DNA of 64,000 nucleotides, taken from positions 62,001-126,000 of the forward strand of contig CDRNST010000227.1 of NCBI GenBank assembly GCA_977016875.1. The letters are read 5' to 3'. The translations under genes and the position numbers were made by a program. This DNA is from Pavona decussata (lineage: Eukaryota). Below, one piece after another: positions 30,380 through 64,000 of this stretch. Position 1 is the first letter of the stretch. Each line of letters begins with the position of its first letter. The notes beneath the pieces were generated by a model. It did no database searches, was not told where the DNA came from, and was given only the letters and a program-made list of their open reading frames with translations.

Positions 30380-32570
30380 TGTACATTGAATGGCTTACTA
30401 GACTGTCCGTTGGAAAATCATGCAAGTGACCAGCGATGGACTTCACTACTGTCCACTTTATGACGTTCAAGCTTTCCAAATCAAAAATAGGCTCTGGCCC
30501 GCCGAGCCACTAGGCCGCTCCAAATCGTAAATCGAGAGATCAATAAAGAAGCTGGTCACCTTTCGGGTGGTAGTATATTTTCTTTTCCGTTGTCCTTAGC
30601 ATATTAACACACATTCTCAGCTAGGGCGACTGATCAGGGTCCCTTGTGACTAATAATGATTGCTTTCGAACAAAGAAGTTTTCCCATTTTGTATGCGTAT
30701 TTTTTATTTAAAAGGTTAAAGATCATATCGTGATCCACAACTTTCCATAGACAAGAGTGACGTCAAGCTTTCATCACACGTAAACTCATTTTAACAGGTG
30801 GAAAAACACTTTTAATCTTTTGCAATGGAATTTTGTCAGTGACGTTTTAAATTGAGCAAAGTGGACCTTACCTGGATAGTCACATACAAATCAAACTGAT
30901 TGCAAGGCAATAGGTTTTTAATCGGTCCAATATCGATAATGGAAGAAGAACTTTCAATAACACAGAAGAAGTGAGGCAAATCAGTCAAACAACACATAAC
31001 TTGTAAATCCTCTTATCCTATCCGGTAAGATGATTGAATGCCCGAGATGCAAAAAGACAGTACATAACAGAACTAAACGCATGCGTCGAACACAGAGAAG
31101 CCACCAGCAACCTTTATCACTTTAATGCTAACAGTGGCTTGCGGCGAACTGTAAACTGAGGCCATTAAATTCCATTCTGTAAAACCCTTTTGTTACAAAG
31201 TTTCAAGGAGTTCATAAACCCTCACTGCATCGCAGTTTTACAGGGTTCAGTATAAACTTATTTGCTCATTTATTCTTGTTGGCTGCGAAGGTTTGTTTCC
31301 AAACTGAAATACCAGGCAATTTCATTCACAGATATATTTTTTTTTCACTTTTCATACCCAACTGCTTTCGTCGTTTGTCTTGCCGCCTATAATTTATTAC
31401 CTTTTATCAGTTTTGTCAGCCTCGTTATTTTCATCTGACAACACTTTCGCTTCATTTCAATGGTAAGTTCATCAACACAGACAATAAAAACTCGATTAAC
31501 TACGTTTGGGGAGGACAGAAATGAGATGGCAGATCCACAGATAGACTGGTCACATACTCGTCCGAGACTAGTTTGACGTGAATAAGCTTTCCTTAGAATA
31601 GATAAATAGATAAATTAACCTCCATTTTAATTGCACCGTGGGGCATTTTGCCAGTTGTATATTTTTCAAAAAATGATATTGGCCCCGGGGGGGGGGGGGG
31701 GGGGATGGGCATTGTTGGAATTAACTGATACATAACGTTTGTTTTTAGGGGTGAAAATGAATTGAGCAACGGTGACAAACGAGAGTCTGTCTTGTGCGTT
31801 TCCGAATGTTTTTCATAGATTTACGACCATCACTTTTCATTCCAGTATGTGAAAGTTGCTCTCCCCCCCTCCCCTCCCCCTCTTCTCCGTGGGCACTTAA
31901 TATAATTTTGTCGTGAATATTCGTGGTATTCAGCCGTCAATCGTCTCCTAAGTCAGTGGTGGGATTGTAGCAATCCTTGGCAATACTAACGTCCACGGAA
32001 ATTCGTCTGAAACAAACCTTGGGGAGACCGATACTGAACAGCACAACACACATCTCTCTCTCTCATCTCATATGATCTCCAATCGCATTGAAAAAAAATT
32101 AAGACAACACTTTGCCAGGTATTTCCCCGGCTATTTTCCTAGTGTGTTTTGACGAATTCCAGCTTTCATGCATTCCGACTGCTTTTATAACTGTTGGTAT
32201 TTGTTTCAAATTACACGATTTCGTCTGGCGTTTATCCGCTTGGTCGATGAAAACACTTTTATAACCTAATTTCACACCGATTTTGTTGACTCTCGACTCT
32301 CCAGCAGAACGTTCGAGTTGTGAAACCATTAGTTTTTTGATAAGATACAATTATCTTGTCATTCATTTCGCCCCAAAATACACGTAACTGAAAACTATAT
32401 TACGTGCATTTAACAGTTTACACTAAAAGTTTATTTTTTATGATGAAATCAAATGACCACTGAAACTAAATCACTGCATACCAACTCTACAGACATTGTG
32501 AGCAGTGACCCCAATATCCTGATATTTGATCTCAAAAAGAAAGAAATCCAGTGCAGAAACAGGAGAAATC

Positions 32571-33569
32571 ATGGAGGCCGAATATTGGGAAGAGGAAAGT
32601 AATGAAACACTACACGAGCAGGAAGGTTTCTCTGTACAGTTCGATGTGTTTCCAATCATTCTCGCTGTGTTGATTGTCGTCGCAAATGGCACCGCCTTAT
32701 TTCTCGTGGCACGCAGGAAGAATCTTCGATCTGCGACAAATGGTGTCTTGGCAAGCTTAGCCGTGAGTGATTTCTTGGCGGGATTCCTTGGTATTCCTTT
32801 TTACCTCGTCTGTAATGCGGCCTATGATCGTTCGTGGTGTCTGTGCAGTGTTGTCTTTTGGCGGTTCGTCTCCGTATCCACTGTCCTTCATCTCACGATT
32901 TTGACGTTGCATCTCTACGCGACCGTGGTTCATGCCGCGAGGTGTAAAGTCCTCCTGAGGCGAAATGTTTCCGCAGGTCTTGTCTGTGCCGTTTGGCTCT
33001 GTGCTGCGTTCGTTTCCCTCGTCCAGCTTTCATGGATCACCGTGGAAAACGAAGAGAGCGAAGAGGAACGACAGCGCGTTCACCTGGCTTATGCCATCAC
33101 TGTACTCGCCGTTTTTCTTGGCGTTCCTCTAGTCACAATCATCTATTGTCACGTGCGTATTTTTGCCAATATCCGGCTGAGCAAAAGGGAACAGACCGTC
33201 GGCAAATTAGAAAACCGGGTTGATTCTGTTGAAGATCAAACACTTGAAAAACACTCCGAAAATTGGAAATTAGGCCTTGTTTTGTTGGGAATGCTTGCTG
33301 CATTTCTGATTTGCTGGGTGCCATATTTCGTGTTGGAACTTGTTACAGACACTGAAGGGATGGGCGCCTTCCCAGATTGGGCAGAATACGTGTTATTTTA
33401 TTACACAAGGTTCACCGCGTCTGCCATTAACCCAGTTCTCTTTGTTATTGGAAAGCGCGATTTCAGGCGGGCGTTTTACGGATGTTTAGGCTGGAATCAA
33501 ACCCAAAGCGAAGACAATGTGGTACTTGGAACTGTGCAATTCTCTACCTTAGAGAACGAGGGAGTTTAA
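32571..33569 (+). CDS. Intronless class A (rhodopsin-like) orphan GPCR, ~332 aa; DRY replaced by HLY and NPxxY by NPVLF
   Basis: Seven hydrophobic segments; TM2 SLAVSD, TM4 W, TM6 CWVP, TM7 NP, helix 8 KRDFRRAF. First ATG at 32571. Clear paralog of 52540-53601. Confidence 0.9.
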   Translation: MEAEYWEEESNETLHEQEGFSVQFDVFPIILAVLIVVANGTALFLVARRKNLRSATNGVLASLAVSDFLAGFLGIPFYLVCNAAYDRSWCLCSVVFWRFVSVSTVLHLTILTLHLYATVVHAARCKVLLRRNVSAGLVCAVWLCAAFVSLVQLSWITVENEESEEERQRVHLAYAITVLAVFLGVPLVTIIYCHVRIFANIRLSKREQTVGKLENRVDSVEDQTLEKHSENWKLGLVLLGMLAAFLICWVPYFVLELVTDTEGMGAFPDWAEYVLFYYTRFTASAINPVLFVIGKRDFRRAFYGCLGWNQTQSEDNVVLGTVQFSTLENEGV

Positions 33570-35211
33570 AACAATCCAACAAATACTTTGAATGCACTCG
33601 GGGGTGGGGGAGGAGAAAGATTGAACAAATGGTGAGACTGATTTTACGTTTGGTAACTTTACTATATTAGTTTACAAGTGAAACCGTAACGCCGGTACCT
33701 TTGCTTTCACTCGAGGAAGATACAAGCCAGAAATGCCAATTTTCGTTCTCCTGCAATCAGGCTCTATTTTTCTTTTAGCGATTGACCACATGGAGGAAAT
33801 TTAAGCGCTTCTCAAATTGGGCCTGATCTTGGGTTACTTTTAGTAAATCATGTCAATGCAGCTGTGTACGAACAGCACTACCAATCACCAGCCTGCCTCT
33901 ATTTGCGTTGGTGGCCAAACTTTGAGAAAGCGTTTAATGGAGTACCAAATTGATACATGATGGAAACTTGGGACACCTTGGTACTCCATTATTCAAGACT
34001 CTGAGTTAACGCTCTCTCCTCTTCTTCAGGAAAAAAAGGGAGTTAATGTCGAAAACGGGAAAAAACGGAAATGGGCCCCGCTCCTCGTTATTTAACTCTC
34101 TCCAGTCCCTTTTTTTGTTCCCCACGCTTCTCATTGTTTCACTCACTCCAGTCCCTTATTTGTCTCTGTTCGAGCGCGTAAGAGGCCTCGGCGGAGGAGA
34201 GAGGAATAAACGGCAAACCTCTGCCACGTTATGTAAGCGGAGAAGGCGCGCGCGTTTAACGGAAGATAGCCGAGAACACCACGTGAATTCTAGCCTGATT
34301 TACAGTATCTTAGCAACGTTTGACAGTTTCACTGATGCCAGGAACGGAGTTTGTTACTACCGGCAGAGAGAAACGTGTTTTCACAAGATTGTTATTTTTT
34401 AATTGAATCTACATTACCTTTGTGGCAAGAAAGTGATCTATAATTAACTAATTAAGCAGTCCACATTTTTCTACACACAAAAGGGTGACCTCCAAGGGAG
34501 GACCAAGGGTTAATTTGTCAATCAACAAAACAAGAGCTTGAAATTAGCGAATAGAAAAGTTTTGAAGTTTCATTGTGTTACTGAAACGGGCGAAGGTTAA
34601 AAAAAGAAATGTTTGTCGCAAAATATTTTTTGCTTGCAAGATGTAGGAAGCAAATAAAATAGAGATTGGAACAAATTATGAAAACCTGCATCTTTAGGCT
34701 AACGCCGACAAACCAACAAACTTGAAACTAATTCGAGCTAACAGCAGGTAAATTAGTTCTTGTAATTATTATTGGAATGGTAAGAGTTTCAGTTTCAGTC
34801 TGCAGAAGGTACAGTTTATGAAGTAGTACAAACTTTTACATTAAGTGTGGAAAATAAAACGAACCGAGTCCTTTTTATAGTGCACCTATAGCACATATTA
34901 CCCACAAAATATCACCACAGCAAAGTACCGTTAGGGCAAACTTACTGCTACATCGATATAACTGAGTCAAGGTTTTGGCAGGTACCAACTTGTTATATAG
35001 CGCAAGGCTATTTCTAATTGGAACAAAGAAGGCAACTAGCATGTCGTGTACAAGATGGTTCGACTGAAAGGTGTCTGCCTTAAACTGGACTCATCATGGA
35101 AAAGGTTACGAAGTCTAATTTGTCTGCGCGTCGAGGTTTGTAATTTATTTTACTTCCCAAAGGAAGCAGATATATTAAGTGCAAAAGTCATTGTAATTCA
35201 AGACAATTTCT

Positions 35212-35514
35212 TCATTTTTTGGGAATAAAAGCATAAAGACACTGCCCACTGTATTTCATGACATCTTGGTCTGTCAATTCTACAAAGAGAAAGGAGATAA
35301 CAATCAATTATCCATGCGCAGTCTTAAAAGGTCGACCAACAGATGCTGTATCACGGGTACTTAGAAAGGTGTCACGTGGGCTAATATCTGTCGAGAAACC
35401 TGTTGCATAGCGACATCCCTAGACAAACCGCGGGCTCTGTTAATCTTAGCTTTTTAGCCTTTTTATCCCGTTTTTAATCTTATCATGCGCAGTTGAACAT
35501 ATCATGAAATTTGC

Positions 35515-35560
<46 letters not shown>

Positions 35561-35898
35561 TATTATTATGGGAATGATAACTTTATTATTTACAAGAATA
35601 AAATCTACTAGATACAGTTTGATTCTATTAAAAGCTGAGTGATTTTACAGTTTGCTGTCATAAAATTGTAAAATATCAACATCTCATATATAAAAGCTAA
35701 TTCATATGGGTTTGGTTCAGAAGAATGAAAGAACAATTTCCACTGATGTAATAAAAATATATCTACCCTCATAATAAGAATATTCTAAATAAATTCCCAG
35801 TCACAGTGTTTCCAATCATACACTAAAAATAATTCAGACTGATTATTATGATTATGATTCTGATTATGATTACGATTACGATTACGATTACGATTACG

Positions 35899-35973
<75 letters not shown>

Positions 35974-38900
35974 CTCAGCACAACCAATTAGTAGTCAGGT
36001 ACAAAAAGTCAACGACACGACCGATTTGGACCAACTTGGAATTTTCAAGAGTGGGTTTCTGTGCTACATGAAGTTCACACGACAGGGAGTTTTTACCAAG
36101 ATGAGTTTGTGATTTCCAGCAAACTTACCCGTGTCGCATTTTGGTGATGCAGACAGTGCAAGTTTTCTTCCTCTCAATCCAAAGACAGCCTTAACCTAAA
36201 ACAATAACAGCAATCCTTTCACTTCTATTGTCAAACATTGAATAGGTAGACGTGGCAACGCTTGAGTTTAAATGTGATATGATGGTCATGTGACCATAGT
36301 CCAATGAAAGCTTTTCAGCATCATTTACGATATTGCTGTTTGCTTGCCACCATTTCAACTGCTTCCGCTCATGAAAACCATAGAAGTGAATTTTTTTTTG
36401 GTGAACGGTAAATTTACACGAAACATTGGCACATTGTTGCACTTAAAAAAAACCCTTCCCTAACACCGAAAGCATTTTAACCCTGGGCTAGAATGTAAAT
36501 GAATTGTTGGTTTTATCAACTGAGATGATAAGGTAATTTAGTCGCCGTAAAGAAATTCGAGAGCTGACTTTTCAAACGTTAGCCCTACGTTTAGCTAACG
36601 CTTGAAACGTGAGCTCTCCAATCTCTTTACGGCGACCAAATTACCTTATCATCTCAGTTGATACATAAAACCAAGTATCCGTTTCCACTCCCCTACCGAC
36701 GCGGCATCATTGTTTCGTTCGATACTAACCCCCTTATACAAATGTAAATGGCTGGTTGAAAGAGACTAACCTCTTGTGTAAGCTGGTCCAAGGTAAGCAG
36801 GTACTCTCCCTGTGGGTTCTCTAACAGCACCGTCGCTTCATGTCCCTTGGTGCCTTGAGCTGGTTCAGCTCCACACAGCTTGACGTTTACAAACCGACAC
36901 ACGGGGGAGGTGGTGGGTTGTTTTTCAGCTGGGAGGGGAGACTTATCTGAAGCTTTTGTTGTTGTACTTACACCACTGATACCATTTGCCTGCCAGGAAA
37001 AAGGCTCATCAATAATATCAATTATTGAATAAATTACTTGCTATACTTTAATAAAAAGCGATTATTTTATCTGCAAATCTATATTCATTGCTATTAAAGG
37101 GACAGCTGGCGCCAAGAGGATTTACTGGGTATAGGGTTGATCAAAATCAACAGCTAATTAAAGCGGTATATTAGAGAGTTTCCGCCCAAACCATAGCTAC
37201 TGTGTATATCATAGAAACCTAACATCTATGGTTTGATTTTGTACAACAGCACTTATGACAGGAAACTCACGATTGGGGAAAATATGAAAACATAAAGTCC
37301 ACGAGGAAAATCAAGACAGAATATAAACGAACCTGATTTTCTTCCGCTGTAAAGACAGAGAATGGTTTTCCCGGAGAACAATCTTCTTGAATTCGCTTGT
37401 CTGCTTCACTGGAAGGTTTGATTTCAATGCTCACCAGCTAAAAAATTATTTTTCAAAAATACATCAAACATGGTGACCAAATTCATATCATTCCAGCCAC
37501 AACTAAAAAATACAATTACCACAAACTGGTAAACAAAATGTTTACCTCCAAGGCTTTGGAAAGGAAAGCCTTGTTTTCCTCAAACACTTGTCTTTCATCA
37601 AACGGTAGAGTAGTTTCCAGTGCTGATGGACCGTCACGCTCCACACATTCCTGTTAATAGAAACAAGTCGGCATGTAACCACAATGATAACGAAGAAGCA
37701 ATTTCTAAAAACACTTTAAATAGGCGCAGAGAGATTAAACCACCTTCAAGGCAGACAATCTATCGCGTGTATGCAACTTAAGCAGTTGCGAAAAGAAAGC
37801 CTAAAACAAAAATTCAGGCTTGAACGGAATTCGAACCCATGACCTCTACGATGCCGGTGCAGTGCTCTACCAACTGGGAGCTGGTCACAATTCACCAAAT
37901 AACAAGCTCCCAGTTGGTAGAGCACTGCACCGGTATCGCAGAGATCATGGGTTCGAATCCCGTTTAAACTGCGATGTGGTTTTCACGTTTTCATAATCTA
38001 TCACGTAGCGACATACTACTCCCCGTAACGGTAACGAAGACAAGCAAATTACAAACACAAATGCTAGAAAAACAAAACAAAACGAAAAAACAAGCAAGGC
38101 AGACAGAAACTATACTCTTTCATTATCGCTCAGGAGCAAATCGGCTCCTAAAATGGTACATTTTTTAACTTTTTGTTATTTGTTTGAACGTATCCAAATG
38201 CTCCTTAACAATTTTAATTTAATTTGCACTTATATTGCGTATGTTCCATATAAAGATGCTCACATAAGAATCGCGGATTGTGATCGATTCACTGTTTCAT
38301 TAGCCAAATTGCTGATCTCTGATCCTTCCTTCGTGACAAAGTTAGGTCCCCGATTTCAAAATATTTGTATGGTCCAATTCCTTCCAAGAACCCGGACATG
38401 TAATCCCACACCCCACCCCTGTGTACCCGGCACCCACCCCTCTGGTCCCTTATCTTACAGGAAATTTATCTATCACGTTCTCTTGATAGATATATACAAA
38501 GAACAAGCTTTAAAACTAGTTGCATTTATGCAGTTATGACAGTTGACTGTACGTTCCTATGTGCTTGGTTTGCCATCTTATTTCAATATTCACGGTGCTG
38601 CTTGAATCAAACACACAACAAGTTCGTTAAGATACCTTCACGTGCTGTACAAATGGCATAAGCTTCTTCATGGCGCTTTTGACTTCCGGTACTGTTTTCA
38701 TCCGGTTCATTATGTCTCTGTTATCGGGGAAATTTCCACCCAGTTGATTGTACATCTCCTTGAGTGTGTTTAGCGTGGCATGCTGCCATGGGGGATAACT
38801 GCTGGCCACATAGATGATTGCATGGGTTGGTTTTGCAGGGGGGCCTGCATCTTTCTGTAAGAAGAAAACAGCAGAACGTTACGTAAATAACATCGCAGCC

Positions 38901-41900
38901 TGATTATAGTTTTATGGCAACGACAGTAGTTACCTTTTTCCCCTTGGGATTCATCATTGCCTTGATTCGCACGCGGAAGTCATGCGCACGCGCTGTTAAG
39001 TAATCAGCTGACTTCAACAGCGGCTGGTCAACCGTCCCTGCTACTGGCCACGGGGCATCCATGATACTTCCACTCTACAATGAACAAGAACAATAAATCA
39101 GCACAGTAATACCAAGCTGAACGTGTTGTGAGACTCAATATGACATACCTTTCCGATCAGCTCCCATATGTGCTCAGCGAGGTGAGGGCAGATGGGGCAA
39201 AGTAACAGCGTTTGGACCTGAAAACACAGTAATATCAAACACATTTAACCGACTGCACGGCATCAGACTCCTCAGCCACTGACCAAAAACCATTGCAGTT
39301 TCGGGGCTACAAAAAAGACTACAGTTGTGTAGGAAATTGAAATGAACCTCAAATTATCATGCTCCTAGAGCCCTCACTCTTCTCTGCTGCTGCCTGATTG
39401 GTTGACCGACAACAACAGCTTGCTTCTGCCGCAAAGAAACGTTTATTCGCGTCCGACATCTGTCTTCCGTTCACAGAAATGAAAGATTAAGATGATGATG
39501 ATGATGACGATGATGATGATAAAAACTTTATTTAGGTGCAAGCCTTGTAGTCTGGGACAACACCCATACTAATTAGGGGACAGAACTTAAAACTAACTAA
39601 TAATAATGATAGCCTTAGCAATACTGTATAGGTGTGTGGAAATGTCATGCAGTTACAAAAATAAAATCTAAAATCTAAAATCAGGGCACAGTCGGTCTCC
39701 CCGGTTTTAACCAACGGCCCGTACACGTTTGTTAGGCGTCCCCAGGCTAAAACATTGTGAGGTTTATGGGGAAAGGGAATTAAGCCAGCGAATTTAACAT
39801 TTTTCTCAATGAGAATAAAAATGGTTCAAAACTTGAATGATAAAAAGTCAGGGGAGAAAAAAATTGCACCATGATGGACCCCACGGCACCTTACCTCAAT
39901 GAACCTAAACACCAGATCCTTATGCATGCCCGCCAAACAGCCCTCCCTGTATCGGTCCCTGGCCGCTTGCAGTTCGTAGAAGCCAGTCTTGAGAGCCTCT
40001 CGGTACATCATGTTCTTATAGTTGGCATCTGTCTCTTCGATGGCTTTGTTGATAGGACTGCAAAAAAAGGTTTGGTGAGTTTGGTGCGCGGATCAATTAA
40101 AACATTCGAAGTTCCGTTGAATATCCATGAAGTATTTCTTTGTATCCCTGTAGTATTATATAATAATTTCTCAGATTTGTATCCGTATCACGTCATTTGT
40201 AATTTGCTAACTATGTTTTGTCTCAAATTTGTATCTGCATCACGTTATTCACAATTAGCTATGATTTCTACAATTTATAATTAGTACTTCCTTATTATCT
40301 GCTTTATATATAGTCACAAATTTGTAAACATCCTTGAACTGAAGTACCCGAAACATGTCTTCTGAACTAAAACGTTGTGTCGTTGTTTTGAAGAAATGTT
40401 TAATATCTGTTCCACAGCGACAACAATTCTGTAAATTAAAAATGCAATAGAGCTTAGGCAAAAATGGCTGATATTTTAATATTCTTTTGTATTCTAACTG
40501 GCCCTACTAGCCACGTTCAAGTTAAAATATTCTTTTGAGTTTTGAACTCAAGAACAAGGTTAGAACAAGGTTAAATTCTATTTAGCCTCTCAAGCAGTCC
40601 TTTTTGAGGGAACTTGCATTACCCGTTTGTTGCAAAGAGGTAATCCTAAAAGCAACTGCTTGGGAGGTTGAAGAATATGGAAATGTCAACCATTTTTGCA
40701 TAGGGTCTATGGACCGTTGAAAAAATCCTCTCTTACTTGATACGCCATAGGCAGCCACCCCTACACCATTTGTTAGAACCCACTAACAAAAGTTTTGCTC
40801 GAAATGTTGAAAACAGTAATTTTATAGATTTTCAATTTAGAAAACTGTTAAAACATAATAAGGACGCCACTGTCAAAAAAACTGTTCACCTCAAGATATG
40901 TGTTCGCCTGTCCAAGTTCTTGTAAAAAGACACTTTAATGGAATAAATTGATACACAAATTGAAGAACTGAAAACATTCTTACCTTTCAAAAACACGATC
41001 ATCAAAAGAGTTTGTTGGCCCAGTGCGAAGTGAATCTTTGCAGGAAATCATTTCCTAAGGTTTAAAAGGAAGTCATGAACATCGATAATGTATTCCCTGA
41101 CTCATTGTCTCATTGGTCCATTTCATGTCACGCGAAAACAAGGTATCGAATAATTTCATTTTACTACTCCCTTTTGTTAGTACACAGTTATGCCACTGTG
41201 CGGACACATTCAACCTGCGCATCATGTTAATGTTAAAGGTTGGATTATGAATGTGCCGCAGTTCCTGTCTGGAAGCACACAATATTTGTTTCCTAAACTG
41301 TGCAACTCGAGGTATACAACGTGTCTTTTTTTTTTTTTTTTTTTTTATTCTGACCTTCGTCCATTCAAGAAACGTGAAAAGACGCAGAATTCCGGCGTCT
41401 GCCATCTTTTCAACAAAGTTCGCATCTTCCATAGTGTCACCAGCGTCAGCTAGGGCCAAGCGCATACCTGAGAACAGAGGAAAACATCATCATTGAAAGG
41501 ACAAACGAGCAAGTGACAAATATTAGTACCATCCACCCCTCGCCCCTGTGGTGTTTAAGCCACATTGCTCACCGGATGGCCTGGAGTGTTTTGATAACAC
41601 TAAATCGAAAAAAATGCATTTACTTACGCTATTGTTCATTAAGGTTACAGTTATGTTAGATATTTACCGTCTGCAGAGAATTTGTTCACAGCCTGATGCA
41701 AGGTGAGAAAGTTCCCAGTCGATTTTGACATCTAAAATAAAACAAAACCATCAAACAAATGTCGGTATAATGGTCCATTCTGAGGTAAAGCCACCACTAC
41801 AAAGAAAAACAAACTCCCATGGATTTCGCATTTCTCGTTAGCAGTGATTGACTGACTTAAGGACGGTGCCTACTTTTGTTACTGCGCATCTCGAGATAAT

Positions 41901-50900: not shown

Positions 50901-53900
50901 TTTTATACTTTGCAAACTAAATAGGGCGTGGAAGCGTTCTTTCTATTTTAAAAGTCATGTACAAAATCAATTTTCCGATTCAGACTTCCTTGTTACAAGC
51001 CAATGCCAGCCCTTTTATTCCTTTTGTCACTCCCACAATCCAACCTTGTCTGACAAGTACAGTTCATTTCACAGTTATTTCCGAGTCTTTTCAAGAATTG
51101 AATACAGATTCGAAGAAAATGAAAAACCCTAAATTGTTCCTTCCAGTTGTTTACGGAAGAAAACAAGATTATGGATGGTACATATCCATGAATACGCAAG
51201 CAGGTTGAGGCTGAAAGCTGTTTCCAGATGATTAATTTGAAAAACATTCGCTCATGCTTATCACAAGAGCCATTCACTGTCAGCCAGTTATTGCTAACTG
51301 ACAATGAATCACCTCACACCTAACGACAGTAAATAATTCAGTCGATAAAACTGAATTTTAATCGGAGCTAAGCGAATTTAATGACCGGTAAGTTCAATCG
51401 AATGCAGTGCTTATCAAATGGGCAAACTCTAAGTTTATCCGATAATATCAATCCTGAATTATCTGCATGAGAAAAGCGTTTTTAATAGCGTGTGCCATTT
51501 TATTTTCCACAGACCGCTTGACTTCACTTCCGTTGTTTTAGAAGAGCGACTTTTGTAGCTGCCGATTTATCGCAAACTAAGGTAGGTCCTATCGGCCGCA
51601 AAACGTTTTCGACACACTTGGGTGCTGCGATTAAGCAAGCACGGTAGGAAATGAGTGCAAGTCTGTATGCACGCAAAACAAAAGGATATTCTTCAGCCAA
51701 AGAAAATAACGCAAAAAATTAATTAAGGAACAACAACAAAAAAACCCAAGCCAACCCATACATATCTATTTTTTGTTACAAAAGCAAAAGCTGTCAGCTC
51801 GGCCGAACGCTGAAGGCAAGGGCACATTATAAAACATAGGATTTGACGCGAAGGAGGTAAAAGGAAGCTGAATTTAAAACTACAATAGATCAACTAGCGA
51901 GTGCTATATGAATCCAATTAAGAGGTTTACATGTACTGGGCTACGAGAATTGAATAAATGAAAAAGAATTTTAAGGTAACAAAAGAGATTGCCTTGCGTT
52001 TCCGATCGAGGCGAAAGCAAAACAAAAGATGGCAAATAAATGTGTGGAAGTTTATGTTTAAAAGCACATTACCGCTTTCACTAACCGTGACGATAGGAAA
52101 TTTATCACAATTAACTGACCTGTCAAGCTGAAAATAGCCACAGGGTGTTTATAAGAAAATGACAAGTGTTTCTCTTCGACTGCATATCAGTTACGTCCAC
52201 AGACTGAGAGATAGCCATTCGACCTTTTTGGGGTAAAATAATTAAGCTTGTGCTGACGCACACGTAAATGAGCGTTGAAGAAATACATAAATAGCGTGTT
52301 AGAGTTCTAACTGCACATTCAGTCAGAGAGGTAGGCGGCTCAAAAACAGCGTTACCATTTTGGAATTGTTTGAGCTCTGTTAACACTTTTTTTACCTTTT
52401 TCATAGCGGACGCCACTTGACGCTTATTCAGTTAGGGGAAAACACTGGGAGAACTAACAAAAGAAACATTGGGGCAACAACAAGCTAAAGGAGACTGGAC
52501 CTAGGGCTTTGCTGCATTTTCACTCGAGAAGAAATAATCATGGATAATACAACACAAGTAGCCGGAGAAAATGAGTATGACAACAACGACACGGAGATTG
52601 AGGGCTCGGCTTCAGGGAGTTGGGAACATTCGGGAGAAGAGATGACGGAGTTTAGCGCGGAATTCGACACATTTCCAATCGTGCTGGCTTGTTGCATCAT
52701 CGCCATTAACCTGACCGTTATAATCCTGTTTATTCGAAACCGCTCTCTTAAAAGTGTCACCAACTCGTTTCTCGTAAGTCTGGCGGCTAGTGACCTGCTG
52801 GCCGGCCTGCTCGGTATTCCACTGTCTATCAGCTGCTCCGTGTTTGGAGACAACAACTTTTGCCCGCCCGCGCAGTTGATATGGCGATTTATATCTGTGT
52901 CCACGGTACTACACATCCTACTTGTCTCTGTGGACCGCTATATAGCGATAAAATACGCTATGCGATACTACAACATCGTCACGCAGACAGTGTTCTTTGT
53001 ACTCACGACCCTCGCGTGGACCACAGCTGCATTTGTGTCCCTTATTCAATTGTCCTGGCGCGCAAACGCCAGCATAGACGAAGAAGAAGAGACGAATACA
53101 GCTCAGGTCATATACGATCTGACTATTTTCGCTCTGTTTTTCGCCTTGCCACTTTGCGTAATGGCTTTCACGTATGGTCGCATTTTTATCACGGTACGAT
53201 ACCACGAGCGGCAGATTTGGCGATATCACAGCCCCTCGGACCCTGAACATGCATGCGCGGAGCACAACAGAGCTCAGCGCAAGACAGCCATCATCTTCCT
53301 AGTCATGTTGATCGTGTTCATAGTTTGCTGGCTTCCGTACTTTATCTTGAGCTTTCAAGAGGAGTTCGGTCACGGTGACGCCCTTCCAGTCTGGGTTCTG
53401 TATGTCTTCTACTACTACACGCGCTTTTTTACTTCGCTATCCAACCCTTTGCTATACGTTCTTGGGAAGAGAGATTTTAGAGAGGCGCTGATTCAAGCAA
53501 TATGCAAGAAAAACAAAGCCAGAAGTGAGAGCCGAGGGAGTACGACATTGACGGCTTTGTATGGAATGGAGCAAAGTAATAGCGCGGTAACAAGCACTTA
53601 AAGGAGCTATGTCGTGGGCCGGGCATTTTTAGTCTTCGAGTCAAAACTATGATGAAATTAAAAAATGCTCGTTAAACCAAAGAAGAAGATATCAATTGCT
53701 TTCTCTAAAAGAAGAACAGACCATTAACAGTTCTTAGCGATGTTTAGAAGAAAAGGGGAAGAGCTGGAAAAATATTGGCCAAATTTTTCAAGCTGCAATA
53801 CATTTCCATCCTGGCCATTGGCAGCCAAAGACACTTTTAAATAATTGCAGTACCCAAGTATGATAAAATGCGACAAGACTGCAGTATAATTTTTAAGTTT

Positions 53901-62900: not shown

Positions 62901-64000
62901 AGCTTGTCGCGCCTGGTTTTTCCAAGGCTCATCACCGTAATCCAAAAACCTACAGGAAAATAAGATGAGTTGACCCTTCTTTCCAATCCTCTCAGACCAA
63001 TGCAAGTTTGCAACAAATATTAAATAAATGGGAAGGTAACATTATGTTCAACTTAGAAAAAGAAATGAAGAAGGTGAGTCGAACAAAACTTTTCCTGTAA
63101 CTTTCGTCAACAATGATCTGCCCGTTGAAAGGAAGCTGGCAATACAAATGATTTTACAACTGAATATCTTTCTTGCGCGTTCCTTTGTTTTCAAATTCTT
63201 ACACAGGTGGTATAAAGACTCTCGTACAAAGGTAGCCCCTATGTATTTTCCGTTGTTACGGTACTTATGTGGGAATAACAGAAATAAAGAAGTTCAACTG
63301 TGCATGGAGACGGAGAATTTTAATTCTTACCACAGTAGACCTTCACCTTTTAAAACCTCTATTTTCACTGGACCCTTATAACCTGCAGCTGCATTGTTTT
63401 TTAGGGTTGGGATCATTGTTCTGTTGTTCGTTGAAAACGGTGCAAGTGCCCCCCCCCCCCCCCCCCACCTTAATCAGCCTCATTCAGTTTCTGTTTAACT
63501 ACAGCTTTATCTTACCACTGGTCACATAGAGCAACAACGCACTCATCCGCTGAACGAGAAATCACTTTTCTTTCTGGCTCCATGTAAATTCGTCCCTCGC
63601 CCTGCAAATCATGAGAAGGGGGTCGTAGTTAGATTTCAGCGCAAAGCACCACTGGGGGAATGGAGGGAGTCCCGCCTCTCCATTTTCTAGAAATAAATGT
63701 TTGCAAGAGAAACAACCAACATAAAAACAAATCCTTTGTAAAACAAAAGATGAAGCAATCTGTGCAAACTTACGCTTTCTATCATTTTCTTCTGCACAAG
63801 TTTTTTCACTTCTTGGACTTTCTGCCCCGCAAATTCCCCGACGATAATGGTTCCCTCGTAGAATCCTTTTTTATAGGTGAGCTCCTTTGCCTCCACCAGA
63901 AGATCCTTGTCGTTTTGGCTTTTTATCTTGAGGTCATCGCACGCCTTTACCGCACATAGGTCCCCATAACCAGGAATCCGGATAATAGGAATAGGTTCAT
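35212..64000 (-). CDS. LARS1: Leucine--tRNA ligase, cytoplasmic (3' 20 exons; 5' part beyond the window)
   Basis: Exons 63774->64000, 63516-63601, 62884-62949, 61567-61649, 59990-60128, 55579-55668, 43160-43288, 42619-42670, 41668-41731, 41355-41467, 40984-41054, 39895-40057, 39149-39217, 38934-39074, 38636-38854, 37546-37650, 37333-37437, 36771-36989, 36129-36195, 35212-35279; all GT-AG and in phase. Motifs [65 protein letters not shown]|[11 protein letters not shown] (KMSKS), [16 protein letters not shown] (-) at 35144-35149. Confidence 0.95.
35516..35972. repeat. (TAT)n microsatellites and a compound (GATTAT)n-(GATTAC)n-(TAT)n array in the last LARS intron
   Basis: (tat)n at ~35517-35568; compound array at ~35841-35972. 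Confidence 0.9.
36507..36738. repeat. Palindromic repeat made of two inverted, truncated hammerhead-type (Penelope-derived) units; relatives at ~47975-48063 and ~49735-49910
   Basis: Arms ttggttttatcaactgagatgataaggtaattt...aaattaccttatcatctcagttgata..aaaaccaa; core gctaacgcttgaaacgt; aaagaaattcgagagctgacttttc shared with 49767. Confidence 0.65.
37772..37967. mobile_element. Two tRNA-derived SINE heads in inverted (hairpin) arrangement
   Basis: 37820-37882 and 37905-37967 are near-perfect reverse complements; the + arm has A box agttggtagagc and B box gggttcgaatcc. Confidence 0.8.
41861..42223. mobile_element. TTAA-flanked MITE (Kolobok-like termini)
   Basis: ttaa|ggacggtgcctact...agtaggcaccgtcc|ttaa: 14-bp perfect TIR and TTAA TSD; purine-purine termini fit Kolobok better than piggyBac. 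Confidence 0.85.
52540..53601 (+). CDS. Intronless class A (rhodopsin-like) orphan GPCR, 353 aa, nested antisense within LARS intron 43289-55578
   Basis: 7 TM; [27 protein letters not shown]; N-glycosylation sequon NTT near the N-terminus. Confidence 0.93.
   Translation: MDNTTQVAGENEYDNNDTEIEGSASGSWEHSGEEMTEFSAEFDTFPIVLACCIIAINLTVIILFIRNRSLKSVTNSFLVSLAASDLLAGLLGIPLSISCSVFGDNNFCPPAQLIWRFISVSTVLHILLVSVDRYIAIKYAMRYYNIVTQTVFFVLTTLAWTTAAFVSLIQLSWRANASIDEEEETNTAQVIYDLTIFALFFALPLCVMAFTYGRIFITVRYHERQIWRYHSPSDPEHACAEHNRAQRKTAIIFLVMLIVFIVCWLPYFILSFQEEFGHGDALPVWVLYVFYYYTRFFTSLSNPLLYVLGKRDFREALIQAICKKNKARSESRGSTTLTALYGMEQSNSAVTST
57783..58555. mobile_element. Non-autonomous TIR element (TA/TWA-flanked, possibly PIF/Harbinger-like)
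   Basis: ta|aggcctgaggcaaacgtcgaatct...agattcgacgtttgccccaggcct|ta; repeated ttcgac/gtcgaa subterminal motifs. Confidence 0.8.
61296..61379 (-). ncRNA. Intronic C/D box snoRNA, copy A; predicted guide for 2'-O-methylation of the 18S rRNA A equivalent to human Am590 (SNORD62/snR41-type)
   Basis: Minus strand: atcagct-GTGATGA-...-ATGA(D')-...-accaatggatcctt-CTGA-gctgat; 6-bp terminal stem atcagc/gctgat; guide complementary to conserved 18S GAGGAUCCAUUGG; same strand as the host gene. Confidence 0.85.
62425..62512 (-). ncRNA. Intronic C/D box snoRNA, copy B (same 18S guide)
   Basis: Minus strand: ttcacggcg-ATGATGA-...-CTGA(D')-...-GTGAGA(C')-...-accaatggatcctt-CTGA-gctgtgaa; 8-bp terminal stem with one G:U; 22 nt identical to copy A around the guide and D box. 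Confidence 0.87.
62820..62870. repeat. 21-bp tandem repeat (~2.4 copies) next to a LARS splice donor
   Basis: acaaagaaacaagctattgac x2 + acaaagaaa. Confidence 0.85.

Follow-up and report, generated by a model that had tools for sequence, protein, structure and literature searches.

The last three exons of the cytoplasmic leucyl-tRNA synthetase (LeuRS) gene, LARS1, of the stony coral Pavona decussata encode a single ubiquitin/UBX-like beta-grasp domain of the PF23567 family, preceded by a flexible linker. This family (Ubiquitin_IARS1) is that of the UNE-I repeats of IARS1, the isoleucyl-tRNA synthetase (IleRS). The gene lies on the minus strand of a 64,000-nt stretch of DNA, referred to here as the window (assembly GCA_977016875.1, contig CDRNST010000227.1, positions 62,001-126,000 of the forward strand). 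UNE-L and UNE-I are the handles by which LeuRS and IleRS join the animal multi-synthetase complex. The coral LARS1 tail is of the IARS1 type; we think that it was probably copied from the terminal exons of IARS1 and that it may have a role in docking. We give this explanation, taken as a whole, a probability of roughly 75%.

The tail of coral LARS1

Several comparisons identify the gene as cytoplasmic LARS1. The upstream exon at 38636-38854 matches residues 926-997 of human LARS1 (E 1.5e-17). The exon that closes the LeuRS core aligns with human residues 1035-1064, which lie immediately N-terminal of UNE-L. The exons of the window are collinear, free of gaps, with the annotated full-length LeuRS of Oculina (P0291, residues 866-1172), Montipora and Pocillopora and with two coral transcript proteins. 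The coral orthologues share the C-terminus ...LYAFIPKK or ...LYAFIAKN (Oculina and Montipora LARS were compared). LeuRS orthologues from corals and anemones also carry PF24810, the RagD-binding region. In humans, release of LARS1 from the multi-synthetase complex signals leucine to mTORC1.

A first-pass annotation, made from the sequence of the window alone, had proposed that three exons downstream of the LeuRS core are spliced to LARS1. Translation of the minus strand reproduces the peptides of that annotation exactly, and the proposed splices are present in contigs from four public runs (four studies). The joints seen there are 35279/36129, 36195/36771, 36989/37333, 37437/37546 and 37650/38636, all of them CT..AC on the plus strand; the first three are those proposed. 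A single contig of 5506 nt (run X4, record 7) spans all of the joints, from the exon at 39149-39219 into the 3' untranslated region (UTR).

The tail belongs to the IARS1 family of domains. Its exons were searched individually, and analyses of the whole domain relied on database orthologues (P0291, P0106-P0108 and others). A metagenomic LeuRS fragment judged to be human (P0228) was excluded from all alignments, trees and folds, and human LARS1 entries were likewise not used in them. The domain part of exon a, the first of the three exons, reads PVCRFVNV...LLENP...LDQLTQE and makes up half of the ubiquitin/UBX-like domain. By itself, exon a matches PF23567 with an E-value of 5.8e-14 (52.4 bits; profile positions 2-46 of 92), and a scan of the coral genome scores the tail at 53.5 bits, relative to a curated cut-off of 22 bits. 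When exon a was compared to all sequences in the PDB, it matched only IARS1, namely chicken UNE-I (7wrs_B, E 1.5e-9) and human IARS1 (9w01_B, E 1.2e-6), and aligned with both repeats. The whole tails of Exaiptasia, Actinia and the coral transcript protein P0108 score 72-84 bits for PF23567, covering profile positions 1-87 of 92, and match no other family.

Predicted structure agrees with this assignment. An AlphaFold2 model of the Oculina tail, whose exon a is 77% identical to that of the window, is a beta-grasp fold with a pLDDT of 90.5. In a Foldseek search with this model, the best match is 7wrs_B (TM-score 0.85, root-mean-square deviation 1.9 Å, 34% identity), and the runners-up are generic ubiquitin-like folds with TM-scores of at most 0.62. 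A search of a protein atlas with the Oculina tail gave no usable match. In an alignment of six LeuRS tails and 12 IARS1 domains (A1), the residues C, N, LLENP and F are invariant and a G (following the F) and a Y are nearly so; all are present in the exons of the window. The first-pass annotation had recognized the likeness to the IARS1 repeats, and both the profile and the fold bear it out.

The coral tail and the UNE-I repeats are thus alike in sequence family, predicted fold and key residues. In both cases a flexible linker connects them to a class Ia synthetase, of which they form the C-terminal end. They differ in host enzyme and in copy number. The host of UNE-I is IleRS, whereas that of the coral tail is LeuRS. 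Vertebrate IARS1 has tandem UBX1 and UBX2 domains behind a KH-like domain, but the coral LeuRS gene has only one PF23567 copy, as does the coral's own IARS1. The UBX domains of IARS1 have been described as the first to be found fused to a synthetase (PMC9643514).

The tail is not special to Pavona decussata. In precomputed Pfam annotations and sequences, LeuRS proteins with both PF24810 and PF23567 occur in Exaiptasia, Actinia, Nematostella, Oculina, Montipora and Pocillopora and in two coral transcriptome proteins. The LeuRS chains of Hydra vulgaris and 12 relatives have no tail and end 1-4 residues past the ...PGKP..F motif. LeuRS with PF22947 (ULD_3, "Leucine--tRNA ligase, ubiquitin-like domain"), which is UNE-L, is found in hemichordates, Priapulus, molluscs, insects, nematodes and vertebrates (for the invertebrates: P0119-P0121, P0125, P0129, P0152, P0173, P0296, P0309 and P0387). 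LeuRS from outgroups (plant, ichthyosporean and other sequences) has no tail. A tree of the LeuRS core, with tails removed, has three well-supported clades, each with one tail state. For the sampled taxa, then, stony corals and sea anemones share the IARS1-type tail, Hydra-type cnidarians have none, and bilaterians have ULD_3. Invertebrate LARS1 has been said to lack UNE-L, and the contact between LARS1 and IARS1 has been said to have arisen with vertebrates (PMC13439101). The presence of ULD_3 in LeuRS of protostomes and hemichordates contradicts these statements.

One protein related to the Hydra-type LeuRS, P0282 from EukProt, is annotated with a C-terminal ubiquitin fold similar to Rad60-SLD_2/UBL3 and has a CAAX-like end, CCCTIL. 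It is probably two adjacent genes merged by the gene model, and it was kept out of the analyses. If it is genuine, LeuRS would have a third type of ubiquitin-like tail.

In the literature library that was searched, we found no paper on this LeuRS architecture, on the tails of cnidarian LeuRS, or on PF23567, PF22947 or Ubiquitin_IARS1. The combination of LeuRS and PF23567 is already visible in automatic Pfam annotations of public proteins. Appended modules shared between synthetases are a known theme. WHEP repeats, GST-like domains and the EMAPII/p43-like domain on MetRS of Caenorhabditis elegans follow the same principle, in which a non-catalytic module is reused across synthetases for complex assembly (PMC4394549). 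Those modules have long been recognized as shared, whereas the names UNE-I and UNE-L were given to domains considered unique to their enzymes, IleRS and LeuRS. The UNE-I module on LeuRS adds to the theme.

The coral IARS1 gene and the origin of the tail

The genome of the coral contains only one other match to PF23567, on contig C218 (L002 418-1710 and L003 9136-9200). This match is the end of IARS1, and an adjacent exon matches IARS1 in the PDB with an E-value of 1e-10. The coral IARS1 terminates in a single PF23567 domain encoded by three exons (Table 1). When these are compared with the exons of the LeuRS tail, both intron positions, both phases and the 67-nt length of the middle exon are equal. 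Exon a of LeuRS is 55% identical to its IARS1 counterpart over 42 amino acids, and exon c is 56% identical over 18.

Relationships among the domains point the same way. A tree built from 28 complete domains groups the four LeuRS tails together (support 82/75) and joins them with the IARS1 domain of Orbicella and another IARS1 domain (89/85). The Orbicella IARS1 domain is 45-55% identical to LeuRS tails, versus 24-45% to IARS1 domains of other phyla. In addition, a stretch of the form ...S.S..CD[ST] is common only to LeuRS tails and coral IARS1 in alignment A1.

The first-pass annotation had inferred that the domain was shuffled as exons between IleRS and LeuRS. The identical intron positions and phases in the coral's own IARS1, together with the domain tree, fit such an exon-level transfer. 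We postulate that the three terminal exons of IARS1 were duplicated at the DNA level with their introns preserved, and that LARS1 took up the duplicate at its 3' end before the lineages of stony corals and anemones diverged. In our judgment such a duplication, in an ancestor of at least the hexacorals, is the probable source of the tail.

The same annotation took the phase-0 junction at the entry to the tail as a sign of the transfer. The junction is real in the coral gene. However, at two metagenomic loci that encode LeuRS plus tail (P0009 and P0013; L005 1130-1534 and L006 485-862), the last core exon and exon a are in one open frame. The entry intron is missing there, so its presence cannot serve as a constant sign of the transfer. 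The phase-0 intron within the domain is widespread: about 40 exon-level open reading frames from many genomes break just after ...Q/E-V, and at least 20 of these have upstream sequence of the IleRS type.

Hydra-type cnidarians manage with no LeuRS handle at all. If this reconstruction is correct, LeuRS has acquired a handle at least twice and from different sources: bilaterians (protostomes included) gained ULD_3, and the handle of corals and anemones was copied from IleRS. The coral gene would then be a clean, intron-marked case of exon transfer between two paralogous housekeeping enzymes.

Two features of the IARS1 domains themselves were noted. IARS1 has a single UBX-like domain in this coral, Orbicella, Limulus and a pseudoscorpion, and two in molluscs and vertebrates. 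In the domain of the coral IARS1, the loop between strands 1 and 2 is shorter by six residues.

Possible role of the tail and competing explanations

In vertebrates, UNE-L binds the catalytic/CP3 part of IARS1 (PMC7229842, PMC13439101); nothing suggests that the coral tail does so. In vertebrate IARS1, the tandem UBX domains grip an EARS1 hairpin, and the loop that connects strand 2 to helix 1 provides part of the contact (PMC9643514). The two domains, which lie in one chain, pack together and form the groove that holds this hairpin; the hairpin is reported to be specific to vertebrates (PMC9643514). More generally, in all animals that have been studied, the appendices at the C-termini of LeuRS and IleRS function in assembly of the complex (PMC4394549, PMC7229842).

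The LLENP motif is retained in the coral tail and, judging from the Oculina model (strand at 26-30, helix at 42-52), should fall in the loop between strand 2 and helix 1. Its retention suggests that the tail binds in the manner of the IARS1 domains, and such binding would imply that anthozoan LeuRS docks through an IARS1-type surface and not through the UNE-L contact. We suspect that the tail is a module for docking to other proteins, by which LeuRS would join the multi-synthetase complex, and that the IARS1-like surface would stand in place of the contact between human UNE-L and the catalytic core of IARS1. We put the chance of such docking at a little below even. LeuRS and IleRS of corals and anemones are probably held in the multi-enzyme complex differently from those of bilaterians, which is what the first-pass annotation had imagined. 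The three states of LeuRS (IARS1-type tail, no tail and ULD_3) provide a natural comparison within and beside one phylum, with Nematostella, Exaiptasia and Hydra as laboratory models, and make both the purpose of the tail and the evolution of complex wiring testable.

A more specific version of docking is a split tandem, in which anthozoan IleRS would contribute one UBX domain and LeuRS the other. Paired in trans, the two might form the same groove, which would both recruit a partner and keep LeuRS attached to IleRS within the LeuRS-IleRS-GluProRS part of the complex. Anthozoans would then have solved independently what UNE-L does in bilaterians. We consider this quite a long shot.

The tail could be a real domain that has no part in complex docking. 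It might be a generic ubiquitin-like module, for example one that protects LeuRS or its partners against ubiquitylation, a role proposed for the UBX domains of vertebrate IARS1, or it might be nearly neutral. The UBX domains of IARS1 are reported to stabilize partner proteins (BRCA1) outside translation (PMC9643514), and LeuRS of the Hydra type functions with no tail. On the other hand, corals and anemones alike have kept the tail, and the invariant residues of the family are intact in it, which argues against neutrality, and the general use of LeuRS and IleRS appendices in complex assembly speaks for docking. Of the alternatives to our overall reading, this is the one that we take most seriously, and we still consider it unlikely.

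A second alternative concerns the age of the tail. LeuRS in the common ancestor of cnidarians and bilaterians might already have had an IARS1-type domain, which was later replaced by ULD_3 in bilaterians and lost in the Hydra lineage. IARS1-type domains are indeed old, being found in cnidarians, chelicerates, molluscs and vertebrates. The copy on LeuRS is not recent, either. It retains the common FGLxGRK motif, which the coral IARS1 has lost, and LeuRS exon a matches vertebrate IARS1 better (E 1.5e-9) than does the coral IARS1's own exon (E 7e-4). However, an ancestral tail would cost one gain, one loss and one replacement, as opposed to two independent gains. Furthermore, LeuRS tails cluster with the IARS1 domains of cnidarians and share the CD[ST] stretch only with coral IARS1, and none of the approximately 240 matches listed is a bilaterian LeuRS with PF23567. 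An ancestral tail seems to us improbable, somewhat more so than a domain with no docking role.

Several points weigh against the reading that we favor, a copy of IARS1 terminal exons that serves in docking. The domain tree is built on 89 columns and its support is moderate. Co-evolution or gene conversion between IARS1 and LARS1 within cnidarians could mimic an origin within that group. The sample does not identifiably include octocorals, non-hydrozoan medusozoans, sponges, placozoans or ctenophores, which leaves room for an older origin followed by losses. BLASTP found no alignment between the 22-residue middle exons of LeuRS and IARS1, which share length, phase and a few scattered residues. 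The library type of the four runs is presumed to be RNA, which is a guess, although contigs that have no introns are in themselves evidence for spliced transcripts. Lastly, in silico pairing of the Orbicella IARS1 UBX domain (A3) with the Oculina LeuRS tail (A1) gave a score of 0.00, a value that is evidence neither way.

It is very unlikely that the tail is orthologous to UNE-L/ULD_3 but strongly diverged, and that it resembles IARS1 only because all three share a ubiquitin-like ancestry. The two tails do occupy the same site of LeuRS, following the ...EDC.PGKP..F motif directly, but this is positional equivalence only. Both are beta-grasp folds, and both presumably serve to anchor LeuRS to partners. 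There is no detectable similarity of sequence or profile between them. Bilaterian LeuRS tails score 92-139 bits for PF22947, and at E<=10 these tails have no match to PF23567 and IARS1-type LeuRS tails have none to PF22947. PF22947 likewise has no match at E<=10 in the exons of the window and none above cut-off across the coral genome, where the best hit (17 bits, E 1.8) contains an internal stop and is on a different contig. The full-length human LARS1 chain (9w01_A, from a cryo-EM structure, in which UNE-L comprises residues ~1062-1176) was not matched by exon a at E<=10 in the search of PDB sequences. In a profile-profile comparison with hhalign, alignments of the PF23567 and PF22947 types gave a probability of 1.7%; the only stretch aligned, 13 columns, pairs the first hairpins at equal profile positions, a point in favor of orthology.

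The folds also differ. The ULD_3 of a hemichordate, as modelled, is a beta-grasp of greater length that has additional strands, and ULD_3 has ~115 residues, compared to ~90 for the coral-type tail. Chicken UNE-I (7wrs_B) is absent from the 50 best Foldseek matches of the ULD_3 model, yet it ranks first for the coral tail. The predicted model stood in for a solved UNE-L in this comparison, 9W01 appears in neither Foldseek list, and the fold library ends in April 2026. Finally, the two intron positions of the tail, with their phases, are equal to those of IARS1. These results largely refute descent from UNE-L and sustain the earlier proposal that the tail is something else.

A mis-assembly, or a chimeric gene model with three exons from another gene, is hardly credible: apart from the guessed run type it has only general possibility in its favor, whereas intron-less contigs from four studies join the tail to LeuRS exons (once within one 5.5-kb contig), the same architecture occurs in at least seven other species with independent assemblies and transcriptomes, and the genuine IARS1 is on a separate contig.

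Gene structure and neighboring features

Coordinates of the LARS1 3' end and of the corresponding IARS1 exons are given in Table 1. Every intron of the tail region is GT..AG, with phases 0, 0 and 1, and the region is free of N stretches. The LeuRS gene extends onward to the end of the window at 64000.

Table 1. Exons and introns at the 3' end of LARS1 in the window, and exons of the IARS1 domain elsewhere in the coral genome.
Feature	Location	Strand	Length	Phase	Remarks
LARS1 upstream exons	37546-37650, 38636-38854, 38934-39074, 39149-39219	minus			contig joints; collinear with coral LARS proteins
LARS1 last core exon	37333-37437	minus	105 nt (35 codons)	0 (donor)	joints at both ends in four runs
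LARS1 entry intron, core to tail	36990-37332	minus	343 nt	0	GT..AG
LARS1 tail exon a	36771-36989	minus	219 nt	0 at both ends	linker of ~29 residues rich in Ser/Thr/Pro/Lys, then first half of domain
LARS1 intron between exons a and b	36196-36770	minus	575 nt	0
LARS1 tail exon b	36129-36195	minus	67 nt (22 codons + 1 base)	1 (donor)
LARS1 last intron	35280-36128	minus	849 nt	1	(TAA)n and hexamer microsatellites abundant
LARS1 tail exon c, coding part	35212-35279	minus			finishes split Glu codon, then 21 residues and TGA stop (35212-35214)
LARS1 3' UTR	34800-35211	minus			minimum extent; transcript contigs continue past 34800
IARS1 domain exon 1	C218			0	ends ...TLDQLKRQ
IARS1 domain exon 2	L002:418-484		67 nt	1 (end)
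IARS1 last exon	L003:9139-9198				20 residues past the phase-1 split codon; ends ...HLYAFVKS

The intron between exons a and b contains a 70-nt inverted repeat (36514-36583 and 36594-36663; 36514-36663 in all) that is 91% complementary, with a loop of 10 nt. One contig of low depth in run X1 has seven A>G differences clustered at 36621-36648, within the inverted repeat. These could reflect editing of the hairpin or another copy of a repeat family. In the last intron, long microsatellites of the (TAA)n/(ATT)n type and a short hexamer array of the ATTACG type are present at 35510-35580 and 35830-35990, and reads appear to be cut there.

Two intronless open reading frames for G-protein-coupled receptors (GPCRs) of the rhodopsin family are present on the plus strand. 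One, of 353 amino acids (7tm_1, E 2.4e-40), is at 52540-53601, within the span of the LeuRS gene and on the opposite strand; it is probably inside a LeuRS intron and appears to be a nested gene. The other, of 347 amino acids (7tm_1, E 1.9e-27), is at 32526-33569, approximately 1.6 kb past the LeuRS stop codon, and the LeuRS transcript contigs that continue beyond 34800 extend in its direction.

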